Source: Cyanophora paradoxa CCMP329 (taxonomy: Eukaryota > Plantae > Glaucophyta). Taken from it: a stretch of DNA of 64,000 nucleotides. The notes below the pieces were generated by a model, which searched no databases, had not been told where the DNA came from, and was given only the letters and a program-made list of their open reading frames with translations. The translations under genes were made by a program, and so were the position numbers. The stretch spans positions 62,001 through 126,000 of the forward strand of contig QPMI01000219.1 in assembly GCA_004431415.1 (NCBI GenBank), read 5' to 3'. Numbering within the stretch: the stretch's first letter is position 1; each line of letters begins with the position of its first letter. This document shows, piece after piece, positions 12,001 through 64,000 of the stretch.

Positions 12001-12208
12001 ACAGTAATGTTGTGTTCTTCCTGATTTTTTGGTTGAAACCATTGAAGAACACGAACAATAGCCAGAAGAACACACTGAACAAGAAGAAAAAAAAATTTGC
12101 TCGGATAGGTCCGGCCAGGCAGGGAGGCGGTTGCCCCCCGCCCCACGCGCCGCTGTTTCCAGCGGCTCGGCCGGACCCTAGGCGCTTTATTTACGATACC
12201 TTAGGCGG

Positions 12209-22153: not shown

Positions 22154-22670
22154 TCCACTCTGAATAAAAGGATACGAACATGCACAAGGCACTTGCCTTG
22201 TGCACCCTGGCATGTGCACCCTGCACCAGCAAGTCACTCAGTGGAAGACCCCAGGTTTGGGATCTGCCACAAAATAGAAGAAAGATGCACCCCAAATCTC
22301 TCTGGGGGAATATGCATGAGGCTAGCCTTAGGCAGATGACCCACCCACCTGCAAGCCACTCAGTCAAAGGCCCCAGATTTCTGATCCGCCACAAAATTGA
22401 AGATTGATGCACCCCAAATCTCTCTGGGGGAATATGCACAAGGCGCTAGCCTAAGGCAGATGAACCCACCCACCAGCAAATCACTCAGTCAAAGGCCCCA
22501 GGTTTCTGATTCGCCACAAAATAGAAGAAAGATGCACCCCAAATCTCTCTGGGGGAATATTTCATGAGGCTAGCCTTAGGCAGATGACCCACCCACCTGC
22601 AAGCCACTCAGTCAAAGGCCCCAGGTTTCTGATCCGCCACAAAATTGAAGATGGATGCACCCCAAATCTC

Positions 22671-37704: not shown

Positions 37705-40700
37705 CCCTTCCCCCCCCCCCCCCCCACACACACTCGAAGTTTAATTAATTTTAAATTATTTCTTAAAAATATTTTTATTTATTATTTATTTTTATTATTA
37801 TCCGGTATCCGGGATCCGGGATCCGGGATCCGGGATCCGGGATCCGGGATCCGGGATCCGGGATCCGGGATCCGGGATCCGGGATCCGGATGCAGCAGCT
37901 GCATGCATCCACATCTGCATGCAGCAGCTGCATGCGTTTGCTTCCGCACGCACCAGCTGCATGCGTTTGCTTCCGCGTGCAGCAGCTGCATGCGTTTGCT
38001 TCTGCGTGCAGCAGCTGCGCGCGTTTGCTTTCGCATGCAAAAGCAGGCATGCAGATGCACGTCCATGCAGAAACTGCATGCAACGTGCAGAAACTGCACG
38101 CTCCGTGCAGAAAGAAGGTTTCTGCGCGGACACTTCTGCACCGGAGCGTTGCCGCGCAGAAAGTGCTCATTTCCGCGCGGGAGACAGTTGCTGCCCGATA
38201 CCCCTGGCCTCCGCCCCGTACAGCGAGCCGCACCGGCGCCCCCTGTGCCGGCGCCCGGCCGGCACCCCGGCCCGGCCAAGCCACGCAGCTCCGCCCCGCC
38301 CCGCCCGGGTGCGGGACTCCTTTCGCGGCGGGTGTCGGCGGCGGGCGGCGGGGCGGCTCGCTGGGACGGCGGCGCAGCGGGCAGCGACGCGGCTTGCCTG
38401 CCGCCGCCCCGTTCCGCGAGCCGCCCCGCTGCCCGCTGCGCCACCGCTCCGTCCCGCAAGCCGCGCCGCCGCCCGCCGCGCCGCCGCCCCGTCCCGCGAG
38501 CCGTGCCGCCGCCGTCCGCTGCTGCCCCGTACGGCGAGCCGCGCCGCCGAAGGCCGCGCCGGGTTACGTCCTGCGCATCGTCAGCTATGCATTTGCGCGC
38601 CGCTGGCCCCAAGCTATGCTTGGGAGGCGCACCCGAGACGACCGCCAATCGGGAGTTCGGCGTCGTTCCGCGCGCACGCAGCGCCCGGCGAGTCCAGACC
38701 CACATGCAATGCGGGCCGGGCCCATCTTAGAGGAACGCTTCGCACACAGAAGCGTGCGAGAGCTCGAAGTCAGCGGCGGCCAGCGTGCCGCCCAACCGTC
38801 GACGCGTTGAACGCTCCTAACAGGCCGCGGGTCAGAGACGGCGATCTGCGGGCGTGAGTGAGACGTACGGCGAGTAACCGGACAGGTAGGCGAGGAACTT
38901 GGCGAGCACGGCGAGTACGGGCGGTTGGGAACAAGCAAGTCAGCGCGCGGGGCGCGCGGATGCAGTCAAGGCGGAGGCTAGTCCTGCGGCAACACCCTCT
39001 GGCTGGCAAAATAGCCGCGCGCTGCGTGCCACGAGCGGCCGCCAAGTCTGCGAGGTGCGACGCGCATCTGGCCCGAGCACGAAGGGAGCTGGAGTTGGAA
39101 GCTGAGGAGCTGCAGACTCTGCACTGCAGCCAGCCGAGCGAACTTGAGGCCAAGGGCGCAAGCGCAGCAGCTGCAGCTGGCACCGCTGGGTATCGTCCGT
39201 AAAAAAAGGGGGGGGGGAAGGAATGACGGCCATTATCGTCGAGTTTCCTTGAAAAATGCATTTCGGGCTGCTACATGTGCGAACAGTGAAGCGAATGCTT
39301 CGTTTGGTTGTATTTAGGCACATAGTAATTGTTTCAGCACTAAGCTGTGACTCTTGACCCTCTGAACGTACTCTCTTGTGGCTGAAATCAAGGGGGGGCA
39401 AAAAAGTGAAAATGACCAAATTAGTCTCTGCAGAAGCGCATCCATATGATCTCAATCACTCCTGAAGTAAGGTATTGATTATATGAGTGATTTAAAGCAG
39501 CTTTCGGAAGGCCCAATACGAGTTTTCGCTGAGATCATGCAGGGGCCATGGTTGAAACATGCAATGCTCTCACGGGTTGCCAGCATCGACTCAAGACACG
39601 CTAAATACATCTTTAGAAAGCCCTTAACTTCCAGATTACAGGAATATATTTTTTGTCCGGTCTGCCGATTCCCGGAACGTCGGTGCACCTTCATGTGTCT
39701 CATTGAGCACATCATGAGCACAGTCTGGTGACTTGATGAACAGCTCATCTTCTCTTCAGTACTGAAAGAAGTCATTCCTGGAATTGCTGATTACCGTCAA
39801 AATGAAGTCGTCAAAGCTTTCGAGGGTCCTCTCTCTGATTTTGAAACAATCCGAGTTTAGATCTAAAGCCATTAGGCGCTAGCACCTTTTTTCGCCAAGG
39901 GGGGGGCCTGTGACTCATTAAGCTGCACGAGCACCAGCAATGCGTGCCACGTCATGAACTGCTCCTTATTGAGAGGGTTTGATGCATTGGAAGGCGGATC
40001 GAAGCGAGGAACGCACATGACCAGACCTAGGCCTAGGCCTAGGCCGGTCTCCAAGGGAATTCGTTGTCGTACCCCGGGTCCCAACTTGCCGACCAGCAAC
40101 CGGCCGCGGTGACTGCGTCGGCTGGCCCTCGTGGCGGCAGACGGCCTTGCCAGATAGTTGCAACTCCTGGCAGCACGGCGGCTCGGTGCGTCGGTTCTGG
40201 GCTTCGCCGCGCAGCCGGACTCCCTGACTCTGTGAACAGGCCGAGCAGCGGTGCTGTTGCCGCAGCGAACGCGGCCACTTTGAGAGAGAACGATGCACCT
40301 CTTGCGCCTTGAGGCTCTCGCCCGGCTCGTGCTGGGTGTGATTTCAAACGCAGACTGTCGCTGCCCCTGCTGCTGGGTTCGGCCGCGGCCGCAAACGCTC
40401 TCGAACGCGTCGTTTTCGACCTCCTTCCGCCCTTAATCTCTACTCGTTGCCCGGCCGCCGCCGGTCAGGTAATGTTGCTTTGACAGGCCCGCGCAGAAAG
40501 GCGAGGCCCCTGCCGATGCGAAGCAAGGTGTTTCTGGTTTCCGTCTGTTTCCTTCGATCGCTCATCCTGCTTGCATGTCAGGGAACACGCACGACCGAGC
40601 CCCGCGAGCACGGCCAAGTGGCGGCCGCGACTTGCTCGCTGGCACTCTTGGCGGCCGGGCGGGAAGCGGTCCCGCTGGTCAAGAAACCTCGCGGACGATG

Positions 40701-41475
40701 CTAACGCACGAGCCTCGCTAACACGGCGCGCTTCGCCCGGTTCCGGGTCCTGTCTCTTCCAACACTCGCAGCTCGCCTGGCTCCTTCTCCCGCAGGCTAG
40801 GTGCTCGTTCTTGTTTCCGCTACTCTCGCCTTGATCTTGTTCTGACACCGGTGACGCGCGCAGCGCAGCGGGTGCCGTTCACGCGCGGCCAGCATCTCGC
40901 ACTTCTTGCTGCGGGAGCTCGGACGGGTGCGGTCTTTTCGCAGGCGCGCGTTCTTCTCCTCTTTTGCTTGACGCTCCGAGCGCAGCGAGCGCCTCGTCCT
41001 CGCCCTCGGCTACGGGCGGGGATGGTGCCGCTGTCACTCCGGATCCGTTCTTCTGCCACTTCTCTTTGCCGAGGTGCACAGCCGCGCGCGCGCATGCCAA
41101 CCTTGTCTCTTTCTGTTCGAGCGTTCGCTGACCGCGACGCTCACAGCGCAATGAGCGCCGCGAGGTGCTGCATGACCTTGTGCGGGTTGCATCACTTCAC
41201 GTCTGAGCCGGTCTGCTAGCGCTGCTCCCTTCACTTGCCGAGGCGCACAGCTCGTTTTTGACACTCCTGTGCTCGCAGCTATCGTGCTGCTAGCCGGGCG
41301 GCGGGTCAGGAGCTCGCTGTTTTGGGGAGTATGGCTCAGAGGTAGGGGGCAGCAGCTGCAACTCGTTTTCTCGGTGCTAGCTATTGACAGGGCTGCCTTG
41401 CCTTTGCGCACATGCATTTTTTGCTGGCAATGCGTTTCTTTAATTTCTGCTTTCTGTATATAGTGGTGAGAGCTA
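37705..41475 (-). repeat. Right arm of the large inverted repeat
   Basis: Reverse complement of 26964-31283 without the 630-bp fold-back element. Scattered SNPs and indels; more diverged at both ends. Confidence 0.93.
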
Positions 41476-44590: not shown

Positions 44591-47500
44591 GGTCCGCCGG
44601 CTGTCGAATGAAGCCTGCTAGTACAGCGCCCTGAGCCCTGCTTCCTATGGATCGGTTCCGGCTCATCGCGGCCTCCGGCGGGCTGTCCGGGCTGGCCAGC
44701 CTGGCCGCGACGTGCCAGAAGTTCATGCAAATGGTACGCAGCCAGTCGCGATCACCGGCTGGGCTCACCTGCTAGGTCGGCGGCAGGCCTGCACGGGCGA
44801 GCTCGGGCCCGCTGAGACCGCGACCGTCACTGTCGGCAACAGTCTGCTGGCACCACAGCCGGGGATGTCGCGCCTTGTGTGGCCGCCCGAGGAGGCCGCC
44901 GACACCATTGCGTGCATAGAGGCGGCCAAGCGGGGCGCCGACACCTACGCCCCCAACTGCGACGACGTTCGTTCGGGCGCGGGCGTGTCCAGCCCTCCCC
45001 GCCGACGCGCGCGCAGTTGTACGCCCTCCTGCGGCAGAACCGCTACTTCGCCGGTGTGAAGAAGCTGCGGCTCGTCTTGGGTTGCAATGTGATCGGCCCG
45101 TAGATGTACCGCCTCCTCAAGGGCGGCGCCGGCCCCAGCCTCGTCTCCGTTGAGTTCTGTCTCGTCCCCAGCTGCTGGGTCAAGGGGGGGCACTTCATGA
45201 TCAGGCACTCCAGCCCCCGCTCCACCTACCTTGCCTGCAAGATCGCCTGCACCGGCCTGCTCAGCGTCCCCAATCAGCTTCAGCGCTTCATCATCACCGA
45301 TGCCGCCGCCGCCTCTGCCGCCAGCAGCTTGCAGCTCCCCGTCTGCGGGGACACCTTCCGTGGCTGCCGCCAGCGACTCGCCGGTGCCGGTGCCGGTGCT
45401 GGCGTCAAGTTCCTGGTACTAGATATATACATCCCTGCCCGCCCCGCCGCCGCCGCCCGACCTGTCGACAGGTGGACGACATCTTGGAGCCCTGCGCCAA
45501 GCTGGAGGACAAGATGGTGTCCATTCTGAGGACGTATCCCGTGACCGACACGGGTGCCCGTCCCACCGATCAGGCACACACCCCCCTCCTAGCGCGGCGC
45601 ACGATCGACGAGGTCCGCCGGCTGTCGAATGAAGCCTGCTAGTACAGCGCCCTGAGCCCTGCACGCGGCAGATGCTTCCTATGGATCTGTTCCGGCTCAT
45701 CGCGGCCTCCGGCGGGCCGTCCGGGCTGGCCAGCCTGGCCGCCACGTGCCAGAAGTTCATGCAAATGGTACGCAGCCAGTCGCGATCACCGGCTGGGCTC
45801 ACCTGCTAGGTCGGCGGCAGGCCTGCGCGGGCGAGCTCGGGCCCGCTGAGACCGCGACCGTCACTGTCGGCAACAGTCTGCTGGCACCACAGCCGGGGAT
45901 GTCGCGCCTTGTGTGGCCGCCCGAGGAGGCCGCCGACACCATTGCGTGCATAGAGGCGGCCAAGCGGGGCGCCGACACCTACGCCCCCAACTGCGACGAC
46001 GTTCGTTCGGGCGCGGGCGTGTCCAGCCCTCCCCGCCGACGCGCGCGCAGTTGTACGCCCTCCTGCGGCAGAACCGCTACTTCGCCGGTGTGAAGAAGCT
46101 GCGGCTCGTCTTGGGTTGCAATGTGATCGGCCCGTAGATGTACCGCCTCCTCAAGGGCGGCGCCGGCCCAGCCTCGTCTCCGTTGAGTTCTGTCTCGTCC
46201 CCAGCTGCTGGGTCAAGGGGGGCACTTCATGATCAGGCACTCCAGCCCCGCTCCACCTACCTTGCCTGCAAGATCGCCTGCACCGGCCTGCTCAGCGTCC
46301 CCAATCAGCTTCAGCGCTTCATCATCACCGATGCCGCCGCCGCCTCTGCCGCCAGCAGCTTGCAGCTCCCCGTCTGCGGGGACACCTTCCGTGGCTGCCG
46401 CCAGCGACTCGCCGGTGCCGGTGCCGGTGCTGGCGTCAAGTTCCTGGTACTAGATATATACATCCCTGCCCGCCCCGCCGCCGCCGCCCGACCTGTCGAC
46501 AGGTGGACGACATCTTGGAGCCCTGCGCCAAGCTGGAGGACAAGATGGTGTCCATTCTGAGGACGTATCCCGTGACCGACACGGGCGCCCGTCCCACCGA
46601 TCAGGCACACCCCCCCCTCCTGGCGCGGCGCACGATCGACGAGGTCCGCCGGCTGTCGAATGAAGCCTGCTAGTACAGCGCCCTGAGCCCTGCGCGCGGC
46701 AGATGCTTCCTTTGGATCTGTTCCGGCTCATCGCGGCCTCCGGCGGGCCGTCCGGGCTGGCCAGCCTGGCCGCCACGTGCCAGAAGTTCATGCAAATGGT
46801 ACGCAGCCAGTCGCGATCACCGGCTGGGCTCACCTGCTAGGTCGGCGGCAGGCCTGCGCGGGCGAGCTCGGGCCCGCTGAGACCGCGACCGTCACTGTCG
46901 GCAACAGTCTGCTGGCACCACAGCCAGGGATGTCGCGCCTTGTGTGGCCGCCCGAGGAGGCCGCCGACACCATTGCGTGCATAGAGGCGGCCAAGCGGGG
47001 CGCCGATGCCTACACCCCCGACTACGACGACGTTCGTTCGCGAGCGGGCGTGTCCAGCCCTCCCCGCGGATGCGCGCGCAGTTGTACGCCCTCCTGCGGC
47101 AGAACCGCTACTTCGCCGGTGTGAAGAAGCTGCGGCTCGTCTTGGGTTGCAATGTGATCGGCCCGTAGATGTACCGCCTCCTCAAGGGCGGCGCCGGCCC
47201 CAGCCTCGTCTCCTTTGAGTTCTGTCTCGTCCCCAGCTGCTGGGTCAAGGGGGGGCACTTCATGATCAGGCACTCCAGCCCCCGCTCCACCTACCTTGCC
47301 TGCAAGATCGCCTGCACCGGCCTGCTCAGCGTCCCCAATCAGCTTCAGCGCTTCATCATCACCGATGCCGCCGCCGCCTCTGCCGCCAGCAGCTTGCAGC
47401 TCCCCGTCTGCGGGGACACCTTCCGTGGCTGCCGCCAGCGACTCGCCGGTGCCGGTGCCGGTGCTGGCGTCAAGTTCCTGGTACTAGATATATACATCCC

Positions 47501-48713
47501 TGCCCGCCCCGCCGCCGCCGCCCGACCTGTCGACAGGTGGACGACATCTTGGAGCCCTGCGCCGAGCTGGAGGACAAGATGGTGTCCATTCTGAGGACGT
47601 ATCCCGTGACCGAAACGGGCGCCCGTCCCACCGATCAGGCACACACCCCCCTCCTAGCGCGGCGCACGATCGACGAGGTCCGCCGGCTGTCGAATGAAGC
47701 CTGCTAGTACAGCGCCCTGAGCCCTGCGCGCGGCAGATGCTTCCTTTGGATCTGTTCCGGCTCATCGCGGCCTCCGGCGGGCCGTCCGGGCTGGCCAGCC
47801 TGGCCGCCACGTGCCAGAAGTTCATGCAAATGGTACGCAGCCAGTCGCGATCACCGGCTGGGCTCACCTGCTAGGTCGGCGGCAGGCCTGCGCGGGCGAG
47901 CTCGGGCCCGCTGAGACCGCGACCGTCACTGTCGGCAACAGTCTGCTGGCACCACAGCCGGGGATGTCGCGCCTTGTGTGGCCGCCCGAGGAGGCCGCCG
48001 ACACCATTGCGTGCATAGAGGCGGCCAAGCGGGGCGCCGATGCCTACACCCCCGACTACGACGACGTTCGTTCGCGAGCGGGCGTGTCCAGCCCTCCCCG
48101 CGGATGCGCGCGCAGTTGTACGCCCTCCTGCGGCAGAACCGCTACTTCGCCGGTGTGAAGAAGCTGCGGCTCGTCTTGGGTTGCAATGTGATCGGCCCGT
48201 AGATGTACCGCCTCCTCAAGGGCGGCGCCGGCCCCAGCCTCGTCTCCTTTGAGTTCTGTCTCGTCCCCAGCTGCTGGGTCAAGGGGGGGCACTTCATGAT
48301 CAGGCACTCCAGCCCCCGCTCCACCTACCTTGCCTGCAAGATCGCCTGCACCGGCCTGCTCAGCGTCCCAATCAGCTTCAGCGCTTCATCATCACCGATG
48401 CCGCCGCCGCCTCTGCCGCCAGCAGCTTGCAGCTCCCCGTCTGCGGGGACACCTTCCGTGGCTGCCGCCAGCGACTCGCCGGTGCCGGTGCCGGTGCTGG
48501 CGTCAAGTTCCTGGTACTAGATATATACATCCCTGCCCGCCCCGCCGCCGCCGCCCGACCTGTCGACAGGTGGACGACATCTTGGAGCCCTGCGCCGAGC
48601 TGGAGGACAAGATGGTGTCCATTCTGAGGACGTATCCCGTGACCGAAACGGGCGCCCGTCCCACCGATCAGGCACACCCCCCCCTCCTGGTGCGGCGCAC
48701 GATCGACGAGGTC
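44591..48713 (+). repeat. Four tandem copies of a ~1034-bp intragenic segment
   Basis: Units start with ggtccgccggctgtcg at 44591, 45612, 46643 and 47677; the junction microhomology is GGTC. Confidence 0.95.
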
Positions 48714-49290
48714 ATCGTCCGCGCGTACAGGCTCCACCCCTCCCTGAGGGCCAGTCGCCCATGTATACAGGCCAGGTGCATGGCGCCGCCGTCCTCCTCT
48801 AGTCCGGGGGTCGCGCGGGCCCTGGGCCTCGTCTTCTTCCTCGACCTCTTCTCCGCTTGGGTGCGTGCCGCAGTCGCCGCCGTCTCACGCGACCCAACCT
48901 GGCCCTGCGCAGGAGTCCTCGAACGACGAGCTGGACCCTCGCAGGGTGGCCACGGCAGTCCTGGATCGCATGCTGGTGACCTCAGGCGCCCAGCTGCGGA
49001 TCGTCGCCACGGGCCTGAACCACGACCGCCTCAGCGCCGACGTTGTCTTCTGCATCGCCACGGGGATCATGCGGGGCTACAGCAACCCCTCGACACTCAC
49101 CGTCGTCTTCGAATGGTGCACGCTTGCGCCCCCCCTCTCCCTCCCCTTTCTGACGCGTGGCCACCCCCCCCCCCCACCAGGTTTGGGGCGGAGTTTGAGG
49201 AGATCTCCTGCCTCTTCCTGGGGCCGGTGGGCCTGCTTGCGGCCCTGCGAGAGCCCCCCCCCCGGCTGTGGCCTCTTCCTCGTCGACTAC

Positions 49291-49591
49291 ACCGCGTCCT
49301 TGGTGGAGTGGTAGAGCGCCGCACTCTCCACTCTTGAGCCTCTGGGTTCGAATCCAGGCCGGCCGAAGCAATCCCGCTTCGAATCCCAGTGTGGTCGTTG
49401 GGGGGTTTGATGGTAACCCAACGCTGGGCGGACCCCATAGCCTCACTCACTGGACCCGAAAGGCCGAAGGTGGGGGCGGTCCTGTGCGTTCCCATAAGAA
49501 CACGCGCATAGGGAGAAGGCTGTGCGAGGAAGGGTAATTGCCCCAGTACGGCCCGGCCCGAGAGCCCCTAAGGGGAGCAAATTTTTTTTTT
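49291..49591 (+). mobile_element. tRNA-derived SINE, ~300 bp, poly(T)-tailed
   Basis: A box TGGTGGAGTGG (49301-49311) and B box GGTTCGAATCC (49345-49355). 15-bp TSD TTCCTCGTCGACTAC at 49276-49290 and 49592-49606. 3' end is CCCC-TAA-GGGG-AGCAAA-T10-12. Confidence 0.92.
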
Positions 49592-50984
49592 TTCCTCGTC
49601 GACTACGCCCCCTGCCCCACCCTCGGCACGGCTGCCGTGCATGTGTCTTCTCGGTAATATAACGCCATATGCAAACAGGTTCTCGCGGCCATGCCAGGTG
49701 ACAGTGCCGAAAGGGCCCCGCAGCACGTCTGGCTCAGGCTAGCGCCTGTGCATATTCCCCCAGAGAGATTTGGGGTGCATCTTTCTTGTATTTTCTGGCA
49801 ACTTGCTGGTTCCGTGTACACATTCCCTTGGAGAGATTTGGGGTGCATTTGTCTTCAATTTTGTGGTGGATTGGAAACCTGGGGCCTTTGACTGAGTTAC
49901 TTGCTGGTGGGTGGGTTCATCTGCCTAAGGCTACTGCCTTTTGCATATTCCCCCAGAGAGATTTGGGGTGCATCTTTCTTCTTTTTTGTCACAGATCCTT
50001 ATCCTGGGGTGGGTGGGTTCATCTTCCTAAGGCAAGTGCCTTGTGCATATTCCCCCAGTGAGATTTGGGGTGCATCTTTCTTCTATTTTCTGGCAGATTG
50101 GAAACCTGGGGCCTTTGACTGTGTGGCTTGCTGGTGGGTGGGTTCATCTTCCTAAGGCTAGCGCCTTGTGCACATTCCCCCAGAGAGATTTGGGATGCAT
50201 CTGGCTTTTTTTGTGGAAGATCCAAAACCTGGGCCCTTTGACTGAGTGACTTGCTGGTGGGTGGGTTCATCTGGCTCAGGCTAGCGCCTTGTGCATATTC
50301 CCACAGAGAGATTTGGGGTGCATCTTTCTTCATTTTTGTCACAGATCAGAAACCTGCAGCCTTCCACTGAGTGACTTGCTGGTGGGTGGGTCATCTTTCT
50401 AAGGCTAGCGTTTTGTGCATATTCCCCCAGAGGGATTCCGGGTGCATTTGTCTTCAATTTTTTGGTGGATCGGAAACCTTGGGCCTTTGACTGAATGAAT
50501 TGCTGGTGGGTGGGTTCATCTTCCTAAGGCTAGCGCCTTGTGCATATTCCCCCAGAGAGATTGGGGGTGCATCTTTCTTCTTTTTTGTCACAGATTCTTA
50601 TCCTGGGGCCTTCGACTGAGTGACTTGCTGGTGGGTGGGTCATCTTTGTAAGGCTAGCGCCTTGTGCATATTCCCCCGGAGAGATTTGGGGTGCATCTTT
50701 CTCCTATTTTTTGGTGGATCAGAAACCTGCAGCCTTCGACTGAGTGACTTGCTGGTGGGTGGGTGATCTTCCTAAGGCTAGCGCCTTGTGCGTATTCCCC
50801 CAGGGAGATTGGGGGTGCATACTTCTTCTATTTTGTGGCAGATCGGAAACCTGGGGCCTCCGACTCAGTGACTTGCTGGTGGGTGGGTTCATCTTCCTAA
50901 GGCTAGCGCCTTGTGCATATTCCCCCAGAGAGATTTAGGGTGCATCCATCTTCTATTTTGTGGTGGACGGAAACCTGGGGCTTG

Positions 50985-51577
50985 GCTGACTCTTCAGTAG
51001 CTCACTGTGCAGCATTGCATGCCCAGAGTCAAGCAGGTAGACGATGTCCAACAAAGGTGACCCTTCTGCACCAAGCGTACTGTCCTGCGATTCCAGCTTT
51101 GGCAATCCAGGAAAAACAAATCACCCAGGGAATGTGGCATCCTGGGAAAAACAAATCTCCGACATGTACCAAAGAATAAGAGAAGCTTCGAGCTACAAGT
51201 ATTACATACAGAGGAAACACTGCTGCAAGACAAGATTTTTTTTGAGGCCTATAAGAAGTACATCTACGTTGGGAAGCAGAGAGACTACGAGCACCAAGAA
51301 GACATCAAGCAGGAACCACTGAGAAGGGAGAAGTGCCAATGTACCACCTGTAAATGCAGGCCACAGCAGTGTGCGTACGTCTCGAAGTGCTTGTTGTCAA
51401 TCCTTCTCGCATGAAACGTGACAGCCCTTTCGAGAATATTCCCAGTTTCGCGAAGTGCAAATGCACTTCCCCAGCGACTGGTATGAAGAACAACGTGCAA
51501 ATGCACCAACCATCCCTGTCCAAACAGAGACATGGGCTTGCCGAGCCAGTACGAGAACAACGGCTTCATAGAAGAGA
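50985..51577. other. Unique ~590-bp fragment between oppositely oriented satellite arrays (second copy 54098-54690)
   Basis: Non-satellite sequence duplicated at a 3113-bp offset along with its flanks; origin not recognised. Confidence 0.8.
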
Positions 51578-54500
51578 ACCAAATCTCTCTGGGGGAACCA
51601 GTCACTAAGTCGAAGGCCCCAGGTTTCCAATCTGCCAGAAAATAGAAGAAAGATGCACCCAAAAACTCTCTGGGGAAATATGCACAAGGCGCTAGCCTTA
51701 GGCAGATGACCCACCCACCAGCAAGTCGCTCAGTCGAAGGCCCCAGGTTTCCGATCGGCCACAAAATAGAAGAAACATGCACCCCAAATCCCTCTGGGGG
51801 AATGTGCACAAGGCGCTAGCGTTAGGCAGATGACCCACCCACCTGCAAGTCACTCAGTTGAAGGGCCCAGGTTTCCAATCTGTGACAAAATAGAAGAAAG
51901 ATGCACCCCAAATCTCTCTGGGGGAATATGCACAAGGCGCTAGCCTTAGGAAGATGAACCCACCCACCAGCAATTCATTCAGTCAAAGGCCCAAGGTGCA
52001 AAGGCCCAAGGTGCATCATTCAGTCAATTCATTCAGAGATTTGGGGTGCATCATTCTTCTATTGTGTGGCGGATCAGAAGCCTGGGGCCTTCAACTGAGT
52101 GACTTGCTGGTGGGTGGGTCATCTGCGTAAGGCTACTGCCTTTTGCATATTCCCCCAGAGAGATTTGGGGTGCATCTTTCTTCTTTTTTGTCACAGATCC
52201 TTATCCTGGGGTGGGTGGGTTCATCTTCCTAAGGCAAGTGCCTTGTGCATATTCCCCCAGTGAGATTTGGGGTGCATCTTTCTTCTATTTTCTGGCAGAT
52301 TGGAAACCTGGGGCCTTTGACTGTGTGGCTTGCTGGTGGGTGGGTTCAGCTTCCCTAATGCACCCCAAATCTCTCTGGGGGAATATGCACAAGGCGCTAG
52401 CCTTAGGAAGATGAACCCACCCACCAGCAATTCATTCAGTCAAAGGCCCAAGGTGCAAAGGCCCAAGGTGCATCATTCAGTCAATTCATTCAGAGATTTG
52501 GGGTGCATCATTCTTCTATTGTGTGGCGGATCAGAAGCCTGGGGCCTTCAACTGAGTGACTTGCTGGTGGGTGGGTCATCTGCGTAAGGCTACTGCCTTT
52601 TGCATATTCCCCCAGAGAGATTTGGGGTGCATCTTTCTTCTTTTTTGTCACAGATCCTTATCCTGGGGTGGGTGGGTTCATCTTCCTAAGGCAAGTGCCT
52701 TGTGCATATTCCCCAGTGAGATTTGGGGTGCATCTTTCTTCTATTTTCTGGCAGATTGGAAACCTGGGGCCTTTGACTGTGTGGCTTGCTGGTGGGTGGG
52801 TTCAGCTTCCTAATGCACCCCAAATCTCTCTGGGGAATATGCACAAGGCGCTAGCCTTAGGAAGATGAACCCACCCACCAGCAATTCATTCAGTCAAAGG
52901 CCCAAGGTGCAAAGGCCCAAGGTGCATCATTCAGTCAATTCATTCAGAGATTTGGGGTGCATCATTCTTCTATTGTGTGGCGGATCAGAAGCCTGGGGCC
53001 TTCAACTGAGTGACTTGCTGGTGGGTGGGTCATCTGCGTAAGGCTACTGCCTTTTGCATATTCCCCCAGAGAGATTTGGGGTGCATCTTTCTTCTTTTTT
53101 GTCACAGATCCTTATCCTGGGGTGGGTGGGTTCATCTTCCTAAGGCAAGTGCCTTGTGCATATTCCCCCAGTGAGATTTGGGGTGCATCTTTCTTCTATT
53201 TTCTGGCAGATTGGAAACCTGGGGCCTTTGACTGTGTGGCTTGCTGGTGGGTGGGTTCATCTTCCTAAGGCTAGCGCCTTGTGCACATTCCCCCAGAGAG
53301 ATTTGGGATGCATCTGGCTTTTTTTGTGGAAGATCCAAAACCTGGGCCCTTTGACTGAGTGACTTGCTGGTGGGTGGGTTCATCTGGCTCAGGCTAGCGC
53401 CTTGTGCATATTCCCACAGAGAGATTTGGGGTGCATCTTTCTTCATTTTTGTCACAGATCAGAAACCTGCAGCCTTCCACTGAGTGACTTGCTGGTGGGT
53501 GGGTCATCTTTCTAAGGCTAGCGTTTTGTGCATATTCCCCCAGAGGGATTCCGGGTGCATTTGTCTTCAATTTTTTGGTGGATCGGAAACCTTGGGCCTT
53601 TGACTGAATGAATTGCTGGTGGGTGGGTTCATCTTCCTAAGGCTAGCGCCTTGTGCATATTCCCCCAGAGAGATTGGGGGTGCATCTTTCTTCTTTTTTG
53701 TCACAGATTCTTATCCTGGGGCCTTCGACTGAGTGACTTGCTGGTGGGTGGGTCATCTTTGTAAGGCTAGCGCCTTGTGCATATTCCCACAGAGAGATTT
53801 GGGGTGCATCTTTCTCCTATTTTTTGGTGGATCAGAAACCTGCAGCCTTCGACTGAGTGACTTGCTGGTGGGTGGGTGATCTTCCTAAGGCTAGCGCCTT
53901 GTGCGTATTCCCCCAGGGAGATTGGGGGTGCATACTTCTTCTATTTTGTGGCAGATCGGAAACCTGGGGCCTCCGACTCAGTGACTTGCTGGTGGGTGGG
54001 TTCATCTTCCTAAGGCTAGCGCCTTGTGCATATTCCCCCAGAGAGATTTAGGGTGCATCCATCTTCTATTTTGTGGTGGACGGAAACCTGGGGCTTGGCT
54101 GACTCTTCAGTAGCTCACTGTGCAGCATTGCATGCCCAGAGTCAAGCAGGTAGACGATGTCCAACAAAGGTGACCCTTCTGCACCAAGCGTACTGTCCTG
54201 CGATTCCAGCTTTGGCAATCCAGGAAAAACAAATCACCCAGGGAATGTGGCATCCTGGGAAAAACAAATCTCCGACATGTACCAAAGAATAAGAGAAGCT
54301 TCGAGCTACAAGTATTACATACAGAGGAAACACTGCTGCAAGACAAGATTTTTTTTGAGGCCTATAAGAAGTACATCTACGTTGGGAAGCAGAGAGACTA
54401 CGAGCACCAAGAAGACATCAAGCAGGAACCACTGAGAAGGGAGAAGTGCCAATGTACCACCTGTAAATGCAGGCCACAGCAGTGTGCGTACGTCTCGAAG

Positions 54501-56468
54501 TGCTTGTTGTCAATCCTTCTCGCATGAAACGTGACAGCCCTTTCGAGAATATTCCCAGTTTCGCGAAGTGCAAATGCACTTCCCCAGCGACTGGTATGAA
54601 GAACAACGTGCAAATGCACCAACCATCCCTGTCCAAACAGAGACATGGGCTTGCCGAGCCAGTACGAGAACAACGGCTTCATAGAAGAGAACCAAATCTC
54701 TCTGGGGGAACCAGTCACTAAGTCGAAGGCCCCAGGTTTCCAATCTGCCAGAAAATAGAAGAAAGATGCACCCAAAAACTCTCTGGGGAAATATGCACAA
54801 GGCGCTAGCCTTAGGCAGATGACCCACCCACCAGCAAGTCGCTCAGTCGAAGGCCCCAGGTTTCCGATCGGCCACAAAATAGAAGAAACATGCACCCCAA
54901 ATCCCTCTGGGGGAATGTGCACAAGGCGCTAGCCTTAGGCAGATGACCCACCCACCTGCAAGTCACTCAGTTGAAGGGCCCAGGTTTCCAATCTGTGACA
55001 AAATAGAAGAAAGATGCACCCCAAATCTCTCTGGGGGAATATGCACAAGGCGCTAGCCTTAGGAAGATGAACCCACCCACCAGCAATTCATTCAGTCAAA
55101 GGCCCAAGGTTTCCGATCCACCAAACAATTGAAGACAAATGCACCCGAAATCCCTCTGGGGGAATATGCACAAGACGCTAGCCTTAGAAAGATGACCCAC
55201 CCACCAGCAAGTCACTCAGTGGAAGGCTGCAGGTTTCTGATCTGTGACAAAAATGAAGAAAGATGCACCCCAAATCTCTCTGTGGGAATATGCACAAGGC
55301 GCTAGCCTGAGCCAGATGAACCCACCCACCAGCAAGTCACTCAGTCAAAGGGCCCAGGTTTTGGATCTTCCACAAAAAAAGCCAGATGCATCCCAAATCT
55401 CTCTGGGGGAATGTGCACAAGGCGCTAGCCTTAGGAAGATGAACCCACCCACCAGCAAGCCACACAGTCAAAGGCCCCAGGTTTCCAATCTGCCAGAAAA
55501 TAGAAGAAAGATGCACCCCAAATCTCACTGGGGGAATATGCATAAGGCACTTGCCTTAGGAAGATGAACCCACCCACCAGCAAGCCACTCAGTCAAAGGC
55601 CCCAGGTTTCCGATCCGCCACAAAATAGAAGATGGATGCACCCCAAATCTCTCTGGGGCAACATGCACAAGGCGCTAGCCTCAGCCAGATGAAGGCACCC
55701 ACCAGCAAGTCACTCAGTCGAAGGCTGCAGGTTTCCGATCTTCCACAAAATCGAACAAAGATGCACCCCAAATCTCTCTGTGGGAATATGCACAAGGCGC
55801 TAGCCTGAGCCAGATGAACCCACCCACCAGCAAGTCACTCAGTCAAAGGGCCCAGGTTTCGTATCCGCCACAAAAAAAGCCAAATGCATCCCAAATCTCT
55901 CTGGGGGAATATGCACAGGCGCTAGCCTTAGGAAGATGAACCCACAAACCAGCAAGCCGCTCAGTCAAAGGCCCCAGGTTTCCGATCCGCCACAAAATAG
56001 AAGAAGGATGCACCCCAAATCTCTCTGGGGGAATATGCACAAGGCCCAAGCCTTAGGCAGATGAACCCACCCACCAGCAAGTCACTCAGTCGAAGGCCCA
56101 GAAAGAACAAGAAAGATGCACCCCAAATCTCTCTGGGGGAATATGCCCAAGGGCATGCTGTTTTCTCGCTTTGGAGTTGATTGTATGGTCAAAGGTTGTT
56201 TTGACAACAGGCCAGCTTTGATTGTGCTTTTTCTCATTGCTGAGTGGTGTCCTCTCATCTGAAGCCCACATGGTCAGCGCAAGTCAAGATATGCAGAGTA
56301 TTGATGCATTTGCATCATGGAGCATTGTTGCTGTTCTTCTATTATCATTGGGCCAGCGAGGACATGGCCATTTCTACCACAGAGTGATTGTTGTGAAGCG
56401 TAGTGACTCTTCCCCTTCTCTCTCGCCGCTAGCAGCTGCCTCGACTTTTCCATTAAACGTCCAACAGA

Positions 56469-57416
56469 TCACTGAAAAGGATCACTGACAACCTTAGATC
56501 CAGGTACCCCACCCCCATAGACACCTACAACTTGATGATATTGCACAGTATCACAGTCACTTACTGGGTTGCTCCATCTGAGCCGGTTGTGAAAGGTAAC
56601 GATACTTCCATCTAGAATTGCCCTCGAAGGATCAAATTTGGCTGCATTCCATGCATCGCGAATGAATTCACCATCAGGATAAAAACCTTCAGCACCCCAG
56701 TGAACTTTAAAATCGTGCAGTAAACGAGAAAAGACCAGAAGCTGAGACGTGTCGATTGATCCAGGTTCTGGATGCCAGGGAAACAGCACAATCCCTTCAT
56801 CACGCAGCTGTCCCATCAGAACAATCTGACGACGTGGATGACTCTGAACAACATGCGCAGTGTGCAAAAGAAAACTACAGTGAATGGTATTGTCCCCATC
56901 AAGATGATAGAACCAAACGTCAGGAAATGAATCATGCACTAAATCAGGATAGAACTGATTCGACTTCTTCAGAACAGCAGAGACTCGTGCCTTTGGCAGA
57001 AGTTCGCAAGGACTTATGAGCACGAGCACATTGTTCGAAGATTTCCGTTTCGCTGTGCGCTCAAGCCACCAATCTCTGGCGATTGTTCCAACATCCGAGA
57101 AATTTTTTAGGTACAGAACTCCTTCAACGTATGGAGTTCCTTCTAACCATGACACAATCTCGGAATGAAAGTTACCTTCGGATTGATAGGCATCAAGACA
57201 AATAAACCAAGTCACGTGCCAAGGATTCCCGTGCACGCAGAGCCTTGGCAGAGTCGTACCAAGAAATCCTCGATACTCGTTGTTCGGAAGTATGGGAGTC
57301 AGAATAAGCATTTCGAGCATGTTACGGTGACTGTTTTGCTGCAGCACAGAGAGCCTTCTAAGGAAAAAAACTGTAAGAACCACGATCAAGAACGCACTTA
57401 AGAGTCGCTTTCTCAT
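56469..57416 (-). CDS. Intronless type II membrane glycosyltransferase, GT-A/GT2-like, ~315 aa
   Basis: Uninterrupted ORF from ATG 57416. Anchor LLSAFLIVVLTVFFL; motifs LILTP, WFICLD, WFYHLDGDN (DxD), IDTSQ and W....Y.DG.FI. Confidence 0.75.
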   Translation of the reverse strand: MRKRLLSAFLIVVLTVFFLRRLSVLQQNSHRNMLEMLILTPILPNNEYRGFLGTTLPRLCVHGNPWHVTWFICLDAYQSEGNFHSEIVSWLEGTPYVEGVLYLKNFSDVGTIARDWWLERTAKRKSSNNVLVLISPCELLPKARVSAVLKKSNQFYPDLVHDSFPDVWFYHLDGDNTIHCSFLLHTAHVVQSHPRRQIVLMGQLRDEGIVLFPWHPEPGSIDTSQLLVFSRLLHDFKVHWGAEGFYPDGEFIRDAWNAAKFDPSRAILDGSIVTFHNRLRWSNPVSDCDTVQYHQVVGVYGGGVPGSKVVSDPFQ

Positions 57417-57752
57417 GTTTCTCACCGGGCCCGGCAACAATCGTACCTGACTTCAAGCTTTCCAGGGGGAAAATGCACAAGGCCTAAGGCCAGTGCTCCC
57501 TGCCCAGCTGTGGCCCTGCGAGAGCTCTGCGTTTCCGAGCGGGACCCCCACTGAGTGTTTAGGAATTTGAACGTTTCCTGGGTTCACTCCCTCTCCTCCC
57601 TGGTCAGTTCGAACTCCCATCGGGCCCACAACAGGTAGTCAGGTGCACGCAAACACTTTCCAGGAGGAACATACACAAGGCGCTAACCTTAGGCAGGTGC
57701 ACCCTGCCCAGCAGAGGCCCTGTAAGAAGTTCCACCAACGTGTCCTGGGTGC

Positions 57753-57852
57753 ACCCTATCCGACTATATCAGCCAAAACAGCAGCAAATCTACTGTATGA
57801 AGACATTGTCTGCTTTCATGGAGTGCCTGGAGTGATTTACACAGATCCAGGC
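57753..57852 (+). pseudogene. Ty3/Gypsy-type integrase fragment (second catalytic Asp region)
   Basis: PYPTISAKTAANLLYEDIVCFHGVPGVIYTDPG matches the rve core pattern HGxPxxIxSDxG. Confidence 0.8.
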
Positions 57853-58017
57853 GGTGCACTTAGGCAGATGAACCCACCCACCAGCAAGTCACTCAGTCAA
57901 AGGCCCCAGGATAAGGCTCTGTGACAAAATAGAAGCAAGATGCACCCCAAATCTCTCTGGGGGAATATGCACAAGGCGCTAGCCTTAGGAAGATGACCCA
58001 CCCACCAGCAAGTCGCA

Positions 58018-58270
58018 CACCAACAAGTGCCCGAAGAAGACGGCGGCGGCCGTGGACTGCATCGCCCGCCAGGCCGCTGCCACGGCGATGGGCCTTGCCG
58101 GACCAGCTGCTCAGAGCGCCGTTGCGGGCACCGCCGCCGGCGCTCTCGAGGCCGCCGCCCTTGAGGCCGCCGCTCGTGAGGCCGCCGCTGCCTTCGCCGC
58201 GAGCGCCGCCACGGGCGCCGTGCGCACGCGCACTGCGATCAACGCCGACTTGGACGGCAACGAGTCCATG
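58018..58270 (+). pseudogene. Ala-rich GC-rich coding fragment, possibly the gag C-terminus after a zinc knuckle
   Basis: HTNKCPKKTAAAVDCIARQAAATAMG...; only the tail of a possible CCHC motif is visible. Confidence 0.35.
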
Positions 58271-58432
58271 GACCACAAAGAAAGGAGACATTCCAGTGCT
58301 TTTGTTTGCATGACTTCGAACTGCAAACAATGCAGGAGAAATGAACTTGTCCCAGTCATTGCGATCCTCATTGACATAGTTGTAGATGATATCTTTAAAG
58401 GATTGATTAAAACGCTCAACCTTTCCAGAAGC
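58265..58432 (-). pseudogene. Ty3/Gypsy-type integrase fragment (catalytic Glu region), inverted
   Basis: The reverse strand reads ASGKVERFNQSFKDIIYNYVNEDRNDWDKFISPALFAVRSHANKSTGMSPFFVVHG. Confidence 0.88.
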
Positions 58433-61400
58433 ATATTCCCCCAGAGAGATTTGGGGTGCATCCTTCTATTTTGTGGCAGATCGGAAACCTGGGGCCTTCA
58501 ACTGAGTGACTTGCTGGTGGGTGGGTCATTTGCCTAAGGCTAGAGCCTTGTGCATATTCACCCAGAGAGATTATGGGTGCATCCTTCTTCTATTTTGTGG
58601 CAGATCGGAAACCTGCTGCCTCTGACTGGGTGACTTTCTGGTTGGAAGAGTAATCTGCGTAAGGCTAGCGCCTTGTGCATATTTCCCCAGAGAGATTTGG
58701 GGTGCATCCTTCTTCTTTTTTGTGGCAGATCAGAAACCAGGGGCCTTCGTCTGAGTGACTTGCGCTAGCCTTAGGCAGATGACCCACCCACCAGCAAGTC
58801 ACTCAATCGAAAGCCCCAGGTTTCCGATCCGCCACAATACAGAAGAAGAGCCTCAGGTTTCCGATCTGCCAGAAAATAGAAGAAGGATGCACTTCAAATC
58901 TCTCTGGGGGAATATTCACAAGGCGCTAGCCTTAGGCAGATTACTCTTCCAACCAGCAAGTCACCCAGTCAGAGGCCGCAGGTTTCCGATCTGCCACAAA
59001 ATAGAAGAAGGACGCACCCAAAATCTCTCTGGGTGAATACGCACAAGGCTCTAGCCTTAGGCAAATGACCCACCCACCAGCAAGTCACTCAGTCGAGGGC
59101 CCCAGGTTTCCGATCCGCCACAATACAGAAGAAGAATGCCCCCCAAATCTCTCTGGGGAAATATGCACAAGGCGCTAGCCTTAGGCAGATGAACCCACCA
59201 ACCACCAAGTCACTCAGTCGAAGGCCCCAGGATTAGGAACTGCCACAAAAAAGAAGCAAGATGCAACCCAAATCACTCTCGGGGAATATGTACAAGGCGC
59301 TAGCCTTAGAAAGATGACCCACCCACCAGCAAGTCACTCAGTCGAAGGCCCCAGGATAAGGATCTGTGACAAAACTGAAGCAAGATGCACCCCAAATCTC
59401 TCTGGGGGAATATGAACAAGGCGCTAGCCTAAGGCAGATGAACCCACCCACCAGCAAGTCACTCAGTTGAAGGCAGCAGGTTTCCAATCTGCAACAAAAT
59501 AGAAACCAGATGCACCCCAAATCTCTCTGGGGGAATATGAACAAGGCGCTAGCCTAAGGCAGATGAACCCACCCACCAGCAAGTCACTCAGTCAAAGGCC
59601 CCAGGTTTTTCGATCCGCCACAAAATAGAAGAAGGATGCACCCCAAATCTCTCTGGGGGAATATGCCCAAGGCGTTTGCGTTACGAAGATGAACCCACCG
59701 ACCAGCAAGTCACTTAGTCAAAGGAAGCAGGTTTCCAATCTGCCACAAAATAGAAGAAAGATGCACCCCAAATCACTCTGGGGGAATATGCACAAGGCGC
59801 TGACCTAAGGGAGATGAAACCACTCACCAGCAAGTCACTCAGTTGAAGGCAGCAGGTTTCCGATCTGCAACAACATAGAAGACAGATGCACCCCAAATCT
59901 CTCTGGGGGGATTTAAACAAGGCGCTAGCCTTAGGCAGATGAACCCACCTACCACCAAGTCACTCAGTCGAAGGCCCCAGGTTTCTGATCCGCCACAAAA
60001 TAGAAGACAGATGCACCCTAAATCTCTCCGGGGGAATATCAACAAGGTGCTAGCCTTTGGCAGATGAACCCACCCACCAGCAAGTCACTCAGTCGAAGGC
60101 CCCAGGATAAGGATCTGTGACAAAACTGAAGCAAGATGCACCCCAAATCTCTCTGGGGGAATATGAACAAGGCGCTAGCCTTAGGCAGATGACCCACCCA
60201 CCAGCAAGTCACTCAGTCAAAGGCCCCAGGTTTTTCGATCCACCACAAAATAGAAGAAGGATGCACCCCAAATCTCTCTGGGGGAATATGCCCAAGGCGT
60301 TTGCGTTACGAAGATGAACCCACCGACCAGCAAGTCACTTAGTCAAAGGAAGCAGGTTTCCAATCTGCCACAAAATAGAAGAAAGATGCACCCCAAATCA
60401 CTCTGGGGGAATATGCACAAGGCGCTGACCTAAGGGAGATGAAACCACTCACCAGCAAGTCACTCAGTTGAAGGCAGCAGGTTTCCGATCTGCAACAACA
60501 TAGAAGACAGATGCACCCCAAATCTCTCTGGGAGGATTTAAACAAGGCGCTAGCCTTAGGCAGATGAACCCACCAACCACCAAGTCACTCAGTCGAAGGT
60601 CCCAGGTTTCTGATCCGCCACAAAATAGAAGACAGATGCACCCTAAATCTCTCCGGGGGAATATCAACAAGGTGCTAGCCTTTGGCAGATGAACCCACCC
60701 ACCAGCAAGTCACTCAGTCGAAGGCCCCAGGAAAAGGATCTGTGACAAAACTGAAGCAAGATGCACCCCAAATCTCTCTGGGGGAATATGAACAAGGCGC
60801 TAGCCTTAGGCAGATGACCCACCCACCAGCAAGTCACTCAGTCAAAGGCCCCAGGTTTTTCGATCCACCACAAAATAGAAGAAGGATGCACCCCAAATCT
60901 CTCTGGGGGAATATGCCCAAGGCGTTTGCGTTACGAAGATGAACCCACCGACCAGCAAGTCACTTAGTCAAAGGAAGCAGGTTTCCAATCTGCCACAAAA
61001 TAGAAGAAAGATGCACCCCAAATCACTCTGGGGGAATATGCACAAGGCGCTGACCTAAGGGAGATGAAACCACTCACCAGCAAGTCACTCAGTTGAAGGC
61101 AGCAGGTTTCCGATCTGCAACAACATAGAAGACAGATGCACCCCAAATCTCTCTGGGGGGATTTAAACAAGGCGCTAGCCTTAGGCAGATGAACCCACCA
61201 ACCACCAAGTCACTCAGTCGAAGGCCCCAGGTTTCCGATCTGCCACAAAATAGAAGAAAGATGCACCCCAAATCTCTCTGGGGGAATATGCACAAGGCGC
61301 TAGCCTTAGGCAGATGACCCACCCACCAGCAAGTCACTCAGTCGAAGGCCCCAGGATAAGAAACTGCCACAAAATAGAAGAAAGACGCACTTCAAATCTC

Positions 61401-64000
61401 TCTGGGGGAATATGCACAAGGCTCTAGCCTTAGAAAGATGACCCACCCACCAGCAAGTCACTCAGTCGAAGGCCCCAAGATAAGGATCTGTGACAAAATA
61501 GAAGCAAGATGCACCCCAAATCACTCTGGGGGAATATGCACAAGGCGAAAGCCTTAGGAAGATTACCAACCCACCAGCAAGTCACTCAGTTGAAGGCAGC
61601 AGGTTTCCAATCTGCAACAACATAGAAGACAGATGCACCCCAAATCTCTCTGGGGGGATTTAAACAAGGCGCTAGCCTTAGGCAGATGAACCCACCAACC
61701 ACCAAGTCACTCAGTCGAAGGCCCCAGGATTAGGATTTGCCACAAAAAAGAAGCAAGATGCACCCCAAATCTCTCTGGGGGAATATGAACAAGGCGCTAG
61801 CCTTAGGCAGATGACCCACCCACCAGCAAGTCACTCAGTCAAAGGCCCCAGGTTTTTCGATCCGCCACAAAATAGAAGAAGGATGCACCCCAAATCTCTC
61901 TGGGGGAATATGCCCAAGGCGTTTGCGTTACGAATATGAACCCACCGACCAGCAAGTCACTTAGTCAAAGGAAGCAGGTTTCCAATCTGCCACAAAATAG
62001 AAGAAAGATGCACCCCAAATCACTCTGGGGGAATATGCACAAGGCGCTGACCTAAGGGAGATGAAACCACCCACCAGCAAGTCACTCAGTTGAAGGCAGC
62101 AGGTTTCCGATCTGCAACAACATAGAAGACAGATGCACCCCAAATCTCTCTGGGGGGATTTAAACAAGGCGCTAGCCTTAGGCAGATGAAGCCACCAACC
62201 ACCAAGTCACTCAGTCGAAGGCCCCATGTTTCTGATCCGCCACAAAATAGAAGACAGATGCACCCTAAATCTCTCCGAGGGAATATCCACAAGGTGCTAG
62301 CCTTAGGCAGATGAACCCACCCACCAGCAAGTCACTCAGTCGAAGGCCCCAGGATAAGGATCTGTGACAAAACTGAAGCAAGATGCACCCCAAATCTCTC
62401 TGGGGGAATATGAACAAGGCGAAAGCCTTAGGCAGATGACCCACCCACCAGCAAGTCACTCAGTCAAAGGCCCCAGGTTTTTCGATCCGCCACAAAATAG
62501 AAGAAGGATGCACCCCAAATCTCTCTGGGGGAATATGCCCAATGCTTTTGCGTTACGAAGATGAACCCACCGACCAGCAAGTCACTCAGTCAAAGGAAGC
62601 AGGTTTCCAATATGCCACAAAATAGAAGAAAGATGCACCCCAAATCACTCTGGGGGAATATGCACAAGGTGCTGACCTAAGGGAGATGAAACCACCAACC
62701 ACCAAGTCACTCAGTCGAAAGCCCCAGGTTTCCGATCCGCCACAAAATAGAAGACAGATGCACCCTAAAACTCTCTGGGGGAATATGCACAAGGTGCTAG
62801 CCTTAGGCAGATGAACCCACCCACCGGAAAGTCACTCAGTCCAAGGCCCCAGGATAAGGATCTGTGACAAAATAGAAGCAAGATGCACCCCAAATCATTC
62901 TGGGGGAATATGCACAAGGCGCAAGCCTTAGAAAGATTACCAACCCACCAGCAAGTCACACATTTGAAGGCAGCAGGTTTCCAATCTGCAACAAAATAGA
63001 AGACAGATGCACCTCAAATCTCTCTGGGGGGATTAAAAAAAAACAAGGCGCTAGCCTTAGGCAGATGAACCCACCAACCAGCAAGTCACTCAGTCGAAGG
63101 CCCCAGGATTAGGAACTGCCACAAAAAAAAAGAAGCAAGATGCAACCCAAATCACTCTCGGGGAATATGTACAAGGCGCTAGCCTTAGGCAGATGAACCC
63201 ACCAACCAGCAAGTCACTCAGTCGAAGGCCCCAGGATAAGGAACTCCCACAAAAAAGAAGAAGGATGCACCCCAAATCTCTATGGGGGAATATGAACAAG
63301 GCGCTAGCCTAAGGCAGATGAACCCACCCACCAGCAAGTCACTCAGTCGAAGGCCCCAGGTTTTTCGATCCGCCACAAAATAGAAGAAGGATGCACCCCA
63401 AATCTCTCTGGGGGAATATGCCCAATGCTTTTGCGTTACGAAGATGAACCCACCGACCAGCAAGTCACTCAGTCAAAGGAAGCAGGTTTCCAATCTGCCA
63501 CAAAATAGAAGAAAGATGCACCCCAAATCACTCTGGGGGAATATGCACAAGGTGCTAGCCTTAGGCAGATGAACCCACCCACCAGAAAGTCACTCAGTCC
63601 AAGGCCCCATGATAAGGATCTGTGACAAAATAGAAGCAAGATGCAACCCAAATCATTCTGGGGGAATATGCAAAAGGCGCAAGCCTTAGGCAGATGAACC
63701 CACCCACCAGCAAGTCACACATTTGAAGGCAGCAGGTTTCCAATCTGCAACAAAATAGAAGAAAGATGCACCCCAAATCTCTCTGGGGGGATTAAAAAAC
63801 AAACAAGGCGCTAGCCTTAGGCAGATGAATCCACCAACCAGCAAGTCACTCAGTCGAAGGCCCCAGGTTTCTGATCCGCCACAACATAGAAGAACAATGC
63901 CCCCCAAATCTCTCCGGGGGAAGATACACAAGGCGCTAGCCTTAGGCAGATGAACCCACCCACCAGCAAGTCACTCAGTCAAAGGCCCCAGGATAAGGAA

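Follow-up and report, generated by a model that had tools for sequence, protein, structure and literature searches.

Two insertions in a 64-kb window of the glaucophyte alga Cyanophora paradoxa (the window being the whole stretch of DNA that was analyzed) end in the same seven nucleotides, GAGCAAA, followed by a run of T. One is a short insert with a tRNA-like head and the other, 37 kb away as originally stated, is a long non-LTR retrotransposon (LINE) with its own reverse transcriptase (RT). The locus raises the question of whether this RT primes on oligo(U), and whether a SINE transcribed by Pol III is copied in trans by the same machinery, using its terminator as a priming tail. The anatomy of both elements, their common terminus, their target sites, and the tails of related LINEs are considered below, together with other routes that could have led to the same ends.

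Anatomy of the SINE Insert

The shorter element is a 301-bp insert on the plus strand (49291–49591) with direct repeats on both sides, composed of the following parts:

49276–49290 (+): 5′ TSD, 15 bp, of which the first 6 bases are pyrimidines
49291–49368 (+): tRNA-like head, a degenerate cloverleaf, Gly-like by eye only
49301–49311 (+): Pol III A box, within the head
49345–49355 (+): Pol III B box, a perfect match at a tRNA-like distance from the A box
49369–49574 (+): body, with no Rfam match
49377–49386 (+): second, partial B-box-like motif
49565–49575 (+): short terminal hairpin (C4, 3-nt loop, G4), whose final G is the first base of the terminal motif
49575–49581 (+): GAGCAAA terminal motif
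49582–49591 (+): T10 tail, the first run of at least four T, putative Pol III terminator and priming tail
49592–49606 (+): 3′ TSD, direct repeat of 49276–49290

The 15-mer of the TSD occurs twice in the whole window, as the TSD pair itself and nowhere else, with a chance expectation of about 6e-7, and a stop-free stretch of the host reading frame is restored once the insert is taken out in silico. The T run following GAGCAAA comprises 12 T (49582–49593), the last 2 of which lie inside the TSD, which agrees with the T10–12 ending that had been described for this element.

No other pair of A and B boxes occurs in the window, where 0.03 would be expected, and this bears out the tRNA-type Pol III head of the original prediction. 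Moreover, the head is about 59% identical (44/74) to the one available non-Cyanophora tRNA, with a score that was reached by 0 of 2000 shuffles. ARAGORN made no tRNA call in the head at its default threshold and did so only at a relaxed one, and no Rfam match was obtained for it; such weak detectability by ARAGORN and Rfam is common among degenerate SINE heads. The body contains no T4 and bears no similarity to the LINE. An origin of the body from 7SL, RNase P/MRP, or a ribozyme was rejected, since it gave no Rfam match and has no HDV or hammerhead core. Reading from the 5′ end, a T4 is first met in the terminal T run, which can therefore serve as a Pol III terminator. The designation as a SINE is provisional and rests on anatomy, namely A and B boxes, short length, lack of coding capacity, a T10 tail, and a TSD, as seen in a single copy, the only one in the window.

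The insert is located just downstream of a tandem array (44600–48700) in which a broken gene-like unit, about 1033 bp long, is present in four copies, and it lies in the continuation of the gene of that array.

The LINE and Its Family

The longer element is an 8437-bp non-LTR retrotransposon on the minus strand (20524–12088), and this copy is probably full length. In the sense direction, its parts are:

20525–20541 (−): 5′ TSD, 17 bp, of which the first 7 bases are pyrimidines
12088–20524 (−): LINE body, with stops at 16464–16466 and 12209–12211 and frameshifts near 15245 and 15130
17691–18482 (−): APE endonuclease domain (Pfam Exo_endo_phos, E 2e-8)
15138–16460 (−): reverse transcriptase ORF piece (Pfam RVT_1, E 4e-15), the start of the domain lying in the upstream piece
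13661–14086 (−): RNase H domain
13205–13270 (−): CCHC zinc knuckle, followed by a C-terminal G..P / IW.PR region
12186–12191 (−): AATAAA hexamer, overlapping the stop codon of the family, about 90 nt upstream of the tail
12107–12178 (−): predicted three-way junction in the 3′ UTR, with a closing stem of about 10 bp, a GAAA-tetraloop hairpin, and a second hairpin (z = −3.6)
12096–12102 (−): GAGCAAA terminal motif
12088–12095 (−): T8 tail, missing from 7 empty target copies
12071–12087 (−): 3′ TSD, 17-bp repeat

The presence of APE and RT domains, the lack of LTRs, the TSD, and the 3′ tail place the element among APE-type non-LTR retrotransposons. No RLE (PD-(D/E)xK) nuclease was found after the CCHC knuckle, either in the LINE family or in 19 aligned relatives. 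The broken ORF was searched piecewise, with searches that reach targets of 0.55–1.75 times the query length. A reassignment of TAG to Gln in this genome was considered and rejected, since a single codon is concerned and other copies read through it. Upstream of the APE domain (18500–20524, −), the ORF is open for about 600–700 codons, in a region that includes three 99-bp internal repeats and hydrophobic stretches and for which no homolog was found among the fetched proteins.

The protein pieces of the LINE are 99–100% identical to EukProt gene models of Cyanophora paradoxa, and the model on tig00000946 has, at its own end, the frameshifted residues of the window copy. The family is also present on four further contigs, tig00000405, tig00000076, tig00001181, and tig00021572, with 89–99.8% amino acid identity, gene-model gaps counted, and three of its gene models contain the APE or RT domain through to the C-terminus in one protein. 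Since near-identical copies occur on these four other contigs, the LINE family is young. A second LINE family in the same genome, with copies on tig00000449, tig00021692, tig00000262, tig00001029, and tig00000396, is about 40% identical to it, while its other relatives show about 30% identity.

Regarding the tail, GAGCAAA (12102–12096, −) is followed by 9 T, 1 of which lies inside the 17-bp TSD, and the T8–9 end that had been claimed for the LINE is thus confirmed. The target is a tandemly repeated host unit with seven uninterrupted copies in the window, each carrying a single T at the junction. Therefore, the T tail is element-borne, a derivation of the T run from the target is ruled out, and both the TSD and the tail of the LINE are established. 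A poly(A) tail read on the wrong strand was also rejected, as the T run lies 3′ of the stop on the coding strand of the LINE and the A and B boxes orient the SINE. Both elements have, as originally proposed, a genuine T tail together with TPRT-type TSDs of 15 and 17 bp.

A different copy of the host repeat contains a 542-bp insert (21614–22155) with a 14-bp TSD, at a distance of about 80 nt from the site used by the LINE, which uses. On the minus strand, the insert is A-rich and has a TSD starting with TTT. The 542-bp insert contains no GAGCAAA-Tn and gave neither a protein hit nor a significant fold; it is possibly a truncated copy of another non-LTR family.

A Shared Terminus of Seven Nucleotides

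GAGCAAA followed by T4 matches only twice in the 64-kb window, at the end of the SINE and at the end of the LINE, which are also the only T-tailed, TSD-flanked inserts outside its satellite arrays. Given a T-tailed end, the chance of finding the same 7-mer is 6.6e-5, and a coincidental match is accordingly rejected. Terminal repeat and target signature are alike in the two elements, one copy of each being at hand: GAGCAAA with T8 (LINE) or T10 (SINE), a TSD of 17 or 15 bp, and a pyrimidine start.

The likeness ends there, although a common stem had also been noted and a 3′ end borrowed by the SINE invoked. Upstream of the 7-mer, neither local nor end-anchored alignments revealed any similarity between SINE and LINE (shuffle p 0.56–0.76), whereas published stringent LINE/SINE pairs have about 45–80 nt and a hairpin in common. 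No common fold was found either: the end of the LINE is predicted to form the three-way junction listed above, whereas the SINE has a hairpin of only 3–4 bp in a 3′ region that folds like shuffles (z = −0.4). With 7 nt in common and stems that are unlike, the two ends do not pass the classical test of 3′-end borrowing. The elements are still linked by their tail, by their target signature, and by a very short signal that they have in common. In the predicted folds, the tail and the final bases of the motif are left single-stranded.

Target Sites and Primer Geometry

Both TSDs start with a T, followed by pyrimidines to make a run of 6 in the SINE and 7 in the LINE, in agreement with the pyrimidine-rich sense-strand targets originally noted. 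Such T-start sites of six pyrimidines are infrequent in the local flanks, at only 1.6% and 4.1%. In the standard geometry of TPRT, the nicked bottom strand is complementary to the start of the TSD. Therefore, the bottom-strand primers are predicted to end in 6 and 7 purines, which could be paired with oligo(U). By analogy, a U tail combined with a purine primer would be the mirror image of the poly(A)/T-tract rule of L1. Correspondences between tail and target have been described in other elements, since the tail base of RTE elements matches the first base of the TSD (PMC6007223) and the T-rich tail of EhLINE1/EhSINE1 was proposed to pair with an A-rich strand (PMC1635306).

Relatives of the LINE and Their Tails

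The RT profile of the LINE group scores R2 structures (E 1e-40) far above human L1 (1e-17), which points to an early-branching APE lineage. This profile, the T tail, and the presence of one long ORF all depart from the L1 clade. The order APE–RT–RNase H–CCHC without an RLE is a Proto1-like architecture as far as domain order goes, while the combination of APE and a C-terminal RLE that defines Dualen/RandI is absent from the window LINE family. In a quick tree without named references, both Cyanophora families fall in an unresolved group, next to a large clade in which the ends that can be read are poly(A), and the (ATT)n-tailed L082 is found on a very long branch, far from the window LINE family.

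Poly(A), usually after AATAAA, terminates L001/L002, L013, L014, L029, L037, L042, and L089. L004 ends in (AAACCTC)n and L082 in (ATT)n, and L003, L005, L087, and L088 show no clear tail. None of the non-Cyanophora relatives with readable ends is T-tailed, and the GAGCAAA motif is not found at the ends of L001–L087. Thus, the T tail looks like a derived feature of the Cyanophora family and not a trait of the clade. Furthermore, most of the relatives fetched combine a separate ORF1 with poly(A), whereas the Cyanophora LINE family combines one long ORF with (T)n.

The candidate for a second LINE with a short T tail, L085/L086, was discarded, as its T run is the terminator of the targeted tRNA-Ala gene. 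This related APE–RT–RNase H element (protein P0024) is inserted at a tRNA-Ala(AGC) gene, with the tRNA 3′ half and terminator duplicated at both ends (L085, 299–372 and ~7280–7330; L086, ~5575–5612). L085 and L086 are two independent contigs with the same junction, and the element looks like a tRNA-targeting member of the lineage. Among the other relatives, the very long L082 and P0016/L088 encode a Ulp1-type protease after the RT (a weak hit in P0016), and L082 has a SET domain too and an (ATT)n end like that of RandI/Dualen. In L001, a diverged copy of the 3′ UTR is seen by eye at the 5′ end (1–150 versus 9020–9170), either a tandem copy or a terminal repeat.

A Possible Mechanism of U-Primed Retrotransposition

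Taking together the T tails, the TSDs, the domain content, the A and B boxes, the common 7-mer, and the purine-rich ends predicted for the primers, we infer a partnership between the two elements. The original prediction had at its core a LINE that is U-primed and parasitized by a Pol III element; based on one copy of each element, this is the best reading and, on balance, probable. In this reading, the RT would prime on U, position itself on GAGCAAA, and copy the SINE in trans, a scheme that we regard as reasonably likely.

Under this scheme, a young Cyanophora LINE family belonging to an early-branching RT lineage of mostly poly(A) members would have switched to oligo(U) priming. Its APE domain would nick the bottom strand, leaving a purine run as the free 3′ end, and this end would pair with the U tract after GAGCAAA through A–U and possibly G·U pairs. 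TPRT and a second nick staggered by 15–17 nt would then generate the TSD. The single-stranded GAGCAAA would be the likely recognition or positioning signal, and the tRNA-headed SINE, bearing the same signal, may be copied in trans by the window LINE family or by a close sister family. The second Cyanophora LINE family is of the same lineage and could be the partner of the SINE.

That a Pol III terminator doubles as the priming tail, as had been suggested, is consistent with the SINE, whose terminal T run would act in both capacities at once. However, this does not extend to the LINE, for which no A or B boxes were found at the 5′ end. The T10 of the SINE is longer than the typical Pol III end of 4–5 U, so slippage would be needed. 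The U tract of the LINE would most simply be templated, as a mononucleotide version of the 3′ microsatellite of non-poly(A) LINEs; it would be primed inside a read-through Pol II transcript and kept by slippage. Counting against the scheme, the LINE keeps an AATAAA near its end, and its relatives with readable ends carry poly(A) or microsatellites. A stronger form of the scheme, in which all copies of the family end in GAGCAAA-(U)n, the primers are purine-ended, and a Pol III terminator preceded by a 7-nt signal is all that a template RNA needs, is a serious possibility that can be held only tentatively.

Alternative Explanations of the Common End

Other routes to the same ends differ in where the U would come from and in what the RT would recognize. 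In both elements, the AAA of the motif directly precedes the T run, and the relatives of the LINE are poly(A)-tailed with AATAAA, as would be expected if a terminal uridylyl transferase added U to RNAs that deadenylation had shortened to A3. In that case, only GAGC would be templated, and the RT would prime on the added U, in a frozen or ongoing state that may have arisen from a poly(A) ancestor. Such AU-tails have been described among the ends of L1 RNA (PMC11014359). However, exactly three A are present in LINE and SINE alike, the SINE has no AATAAA, and uridylation in human cells inhibits L1, blocking it instead of priming it (PMC11014359). Uridylated ends are an unlikely source of the T runs.

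An RT of broader tolerance has also to be considered, since the maize LINE1-1 was inferred to be the partner of one poly(T) and one poly(A) SINE (PMC2774510). If the RT of the Cyanophora LINE primed on A or U tails alike, the T run would be a chance state of this LINE copy, and the SINE would be a T-tailed SINE of the usual sort that has borrowed only a minimal end. A single LINE copy was examined and the background of the clade is poly(A), both of which suit such an explanation; nevertheless, the window copy has no A tail, and both inserts are found at pyrimidine-start targets, as U priming predicts. We consider this dual priming improbable.

The lack of similarity or common structure 5′ of the 7-mer could also mean that oligo(U) alone suffices, that any Pol III transcript is copied, and that the 7-mer plays no recognition role, in which case the insert would either derive from a cellular Pol III RNA by a rare retrocopying event or be the SINE of another partner. 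Both the 7/7 match at the exact terminus (p ~7e-5) and a SINE body with no Rfam family match oppose this relaxed priming, which is quite doubtful. Finally, transcription of the LINE itself by Pol III, terminating at its own T run, is very improbable, because the absence of T4 anywhere in its 8429-nt sense strand is expected from composition (0.7 expected, p 0.53) and was rejected as a Pol III sign, the 5′ end is devoid of A/B boxes, and an uncapped RNA would have to support the translation of an ORF of 2000+ aa.

Comparison with Known LINE/SINE Systems

T-tailed SINEs, which occur in grasses and other plants, and poly(U) priming are already known, and an autonomous APE-type LINE ending in pure (T)n had been predicted. 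Poly(U) priming by LINE RTs has been proposed (PMC2774510, PMC3472496), and the LINE recognizing poly(U) that poly(T) SINEs require was said to be unreported in plants (Ohshima 2012, PMC3472496). Later work attributed the Au-like SINEs to RTE elements with a (GTT)n tail (PMC6007223). The SINEs p-SINE1-3, Au/ZmAU, ZmSINE1, and ZmSINE2 resemble the C. paradoxa SINE in their tRNA-derived head, (T)n tail, and T-start TSD. However, the identified partners of plant poly(T) SINEs are not (T)n, since RTE elements are (GTT)n and flowering-plant L1 elements almost all (A)n, whereas the Cyanophora LINE is itself pure (T)n and the common end is only 7 nt long.

EhLINE1 of Entamoeba, whose genome is AT-rich, belongs to the RLE type (R4-like), and the 3′ end that it shares is long. 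EhLINE1 and EhSINE1 are similar to the Cyanophora elements in forming a pair with a T-rich 3′ tail and pyrimidine-rich targets (PMC1635306, PMC2996970). In contrast, the head of EhSINE1 is of unknown origin, while the Cyanophora SINE is tRNA-headed and the LINE proposed as its partner is of the APE type with RNase H.

Among algae, the Dualen/RandI elements of Chlamydomonas are alike in their early-branching RT, the presence of APE and RNase H, and one very long ORF, and RandI and SINEX-1,2,4,5,6 have T-rich 3′ repeats in common, namely (ATT)n, (CTTT)n, and (CTATTT)n. The Cyanophora LINE differs in having no RLE domain and a homopolymer tail. Proto1-type LINEs, a lineage that branches before L1, show the same domain order without an RLE. 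Proto1 carries RNase H (PMC4640811). Human L1/Alu is comparable in its APE-type TPRT, TSDs of about 15 bp, pairing of tail to target, and a SINE parasite transcribed by Pol III, but the polarity is opposite, an A tail with a T-rich primer in human L1/Alu versus a U tail with a purine primer in Cyanophora.

A literature search that was blind to the string poly(T) and had Repbase outside its reach did not turn up any autonomous APE-type LINE with a pure (T)n end, and within the same limited search no earlier report of the Cyanophora LINE/SINE pair was found. If the young, multi-copy LINE does have a pure (T)n end, U-primed TPRT would be directly testable, and tail polarity could flip inside a clade of poly(A)-tailed members. 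This would raise the question of how the LINE tolerates or exploits uridylation, a restrictor of human L1. Moreover, if nothing beyond 7 nt and a Pol III terminator is required, the template rule would be very compact and relevant to RT-based gene insertion. Should the stronger form of the scheme be true, this would be the LINE recognizing poly(U) that had been predicted to exist in plant-lineage genomes, and its recognition signal would be unusually small.

Other Features of the Window

Apart from the two T-tailed elements, several repeats and low-GC regions are present in the window. Low-GC, intron-free ORFs occupy positions 1–5000. One stretch, 4449–4985, gave a weak DUF5901 hit (E 0.004), and part of it has been captured, together with 124-bp satellite, in a 967-bp tandem unit (6050–11850). 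These sequences may be endogenous viral DNA of the alga. A 124–125-bp satellite organized in higher-order repeats of about 625 bp, with several inversions, extends over 49700–64000, 6050–11850, and 20670–22660. Lastly, an inverted repeat of about 2.9 kb (27327–30208 and 38201–41107; 98–99%) surrounds 348-bp tandem arrays and (GGATCCC)n runs, and the whole structure is perhaps a large foldback element or DNA transposon.
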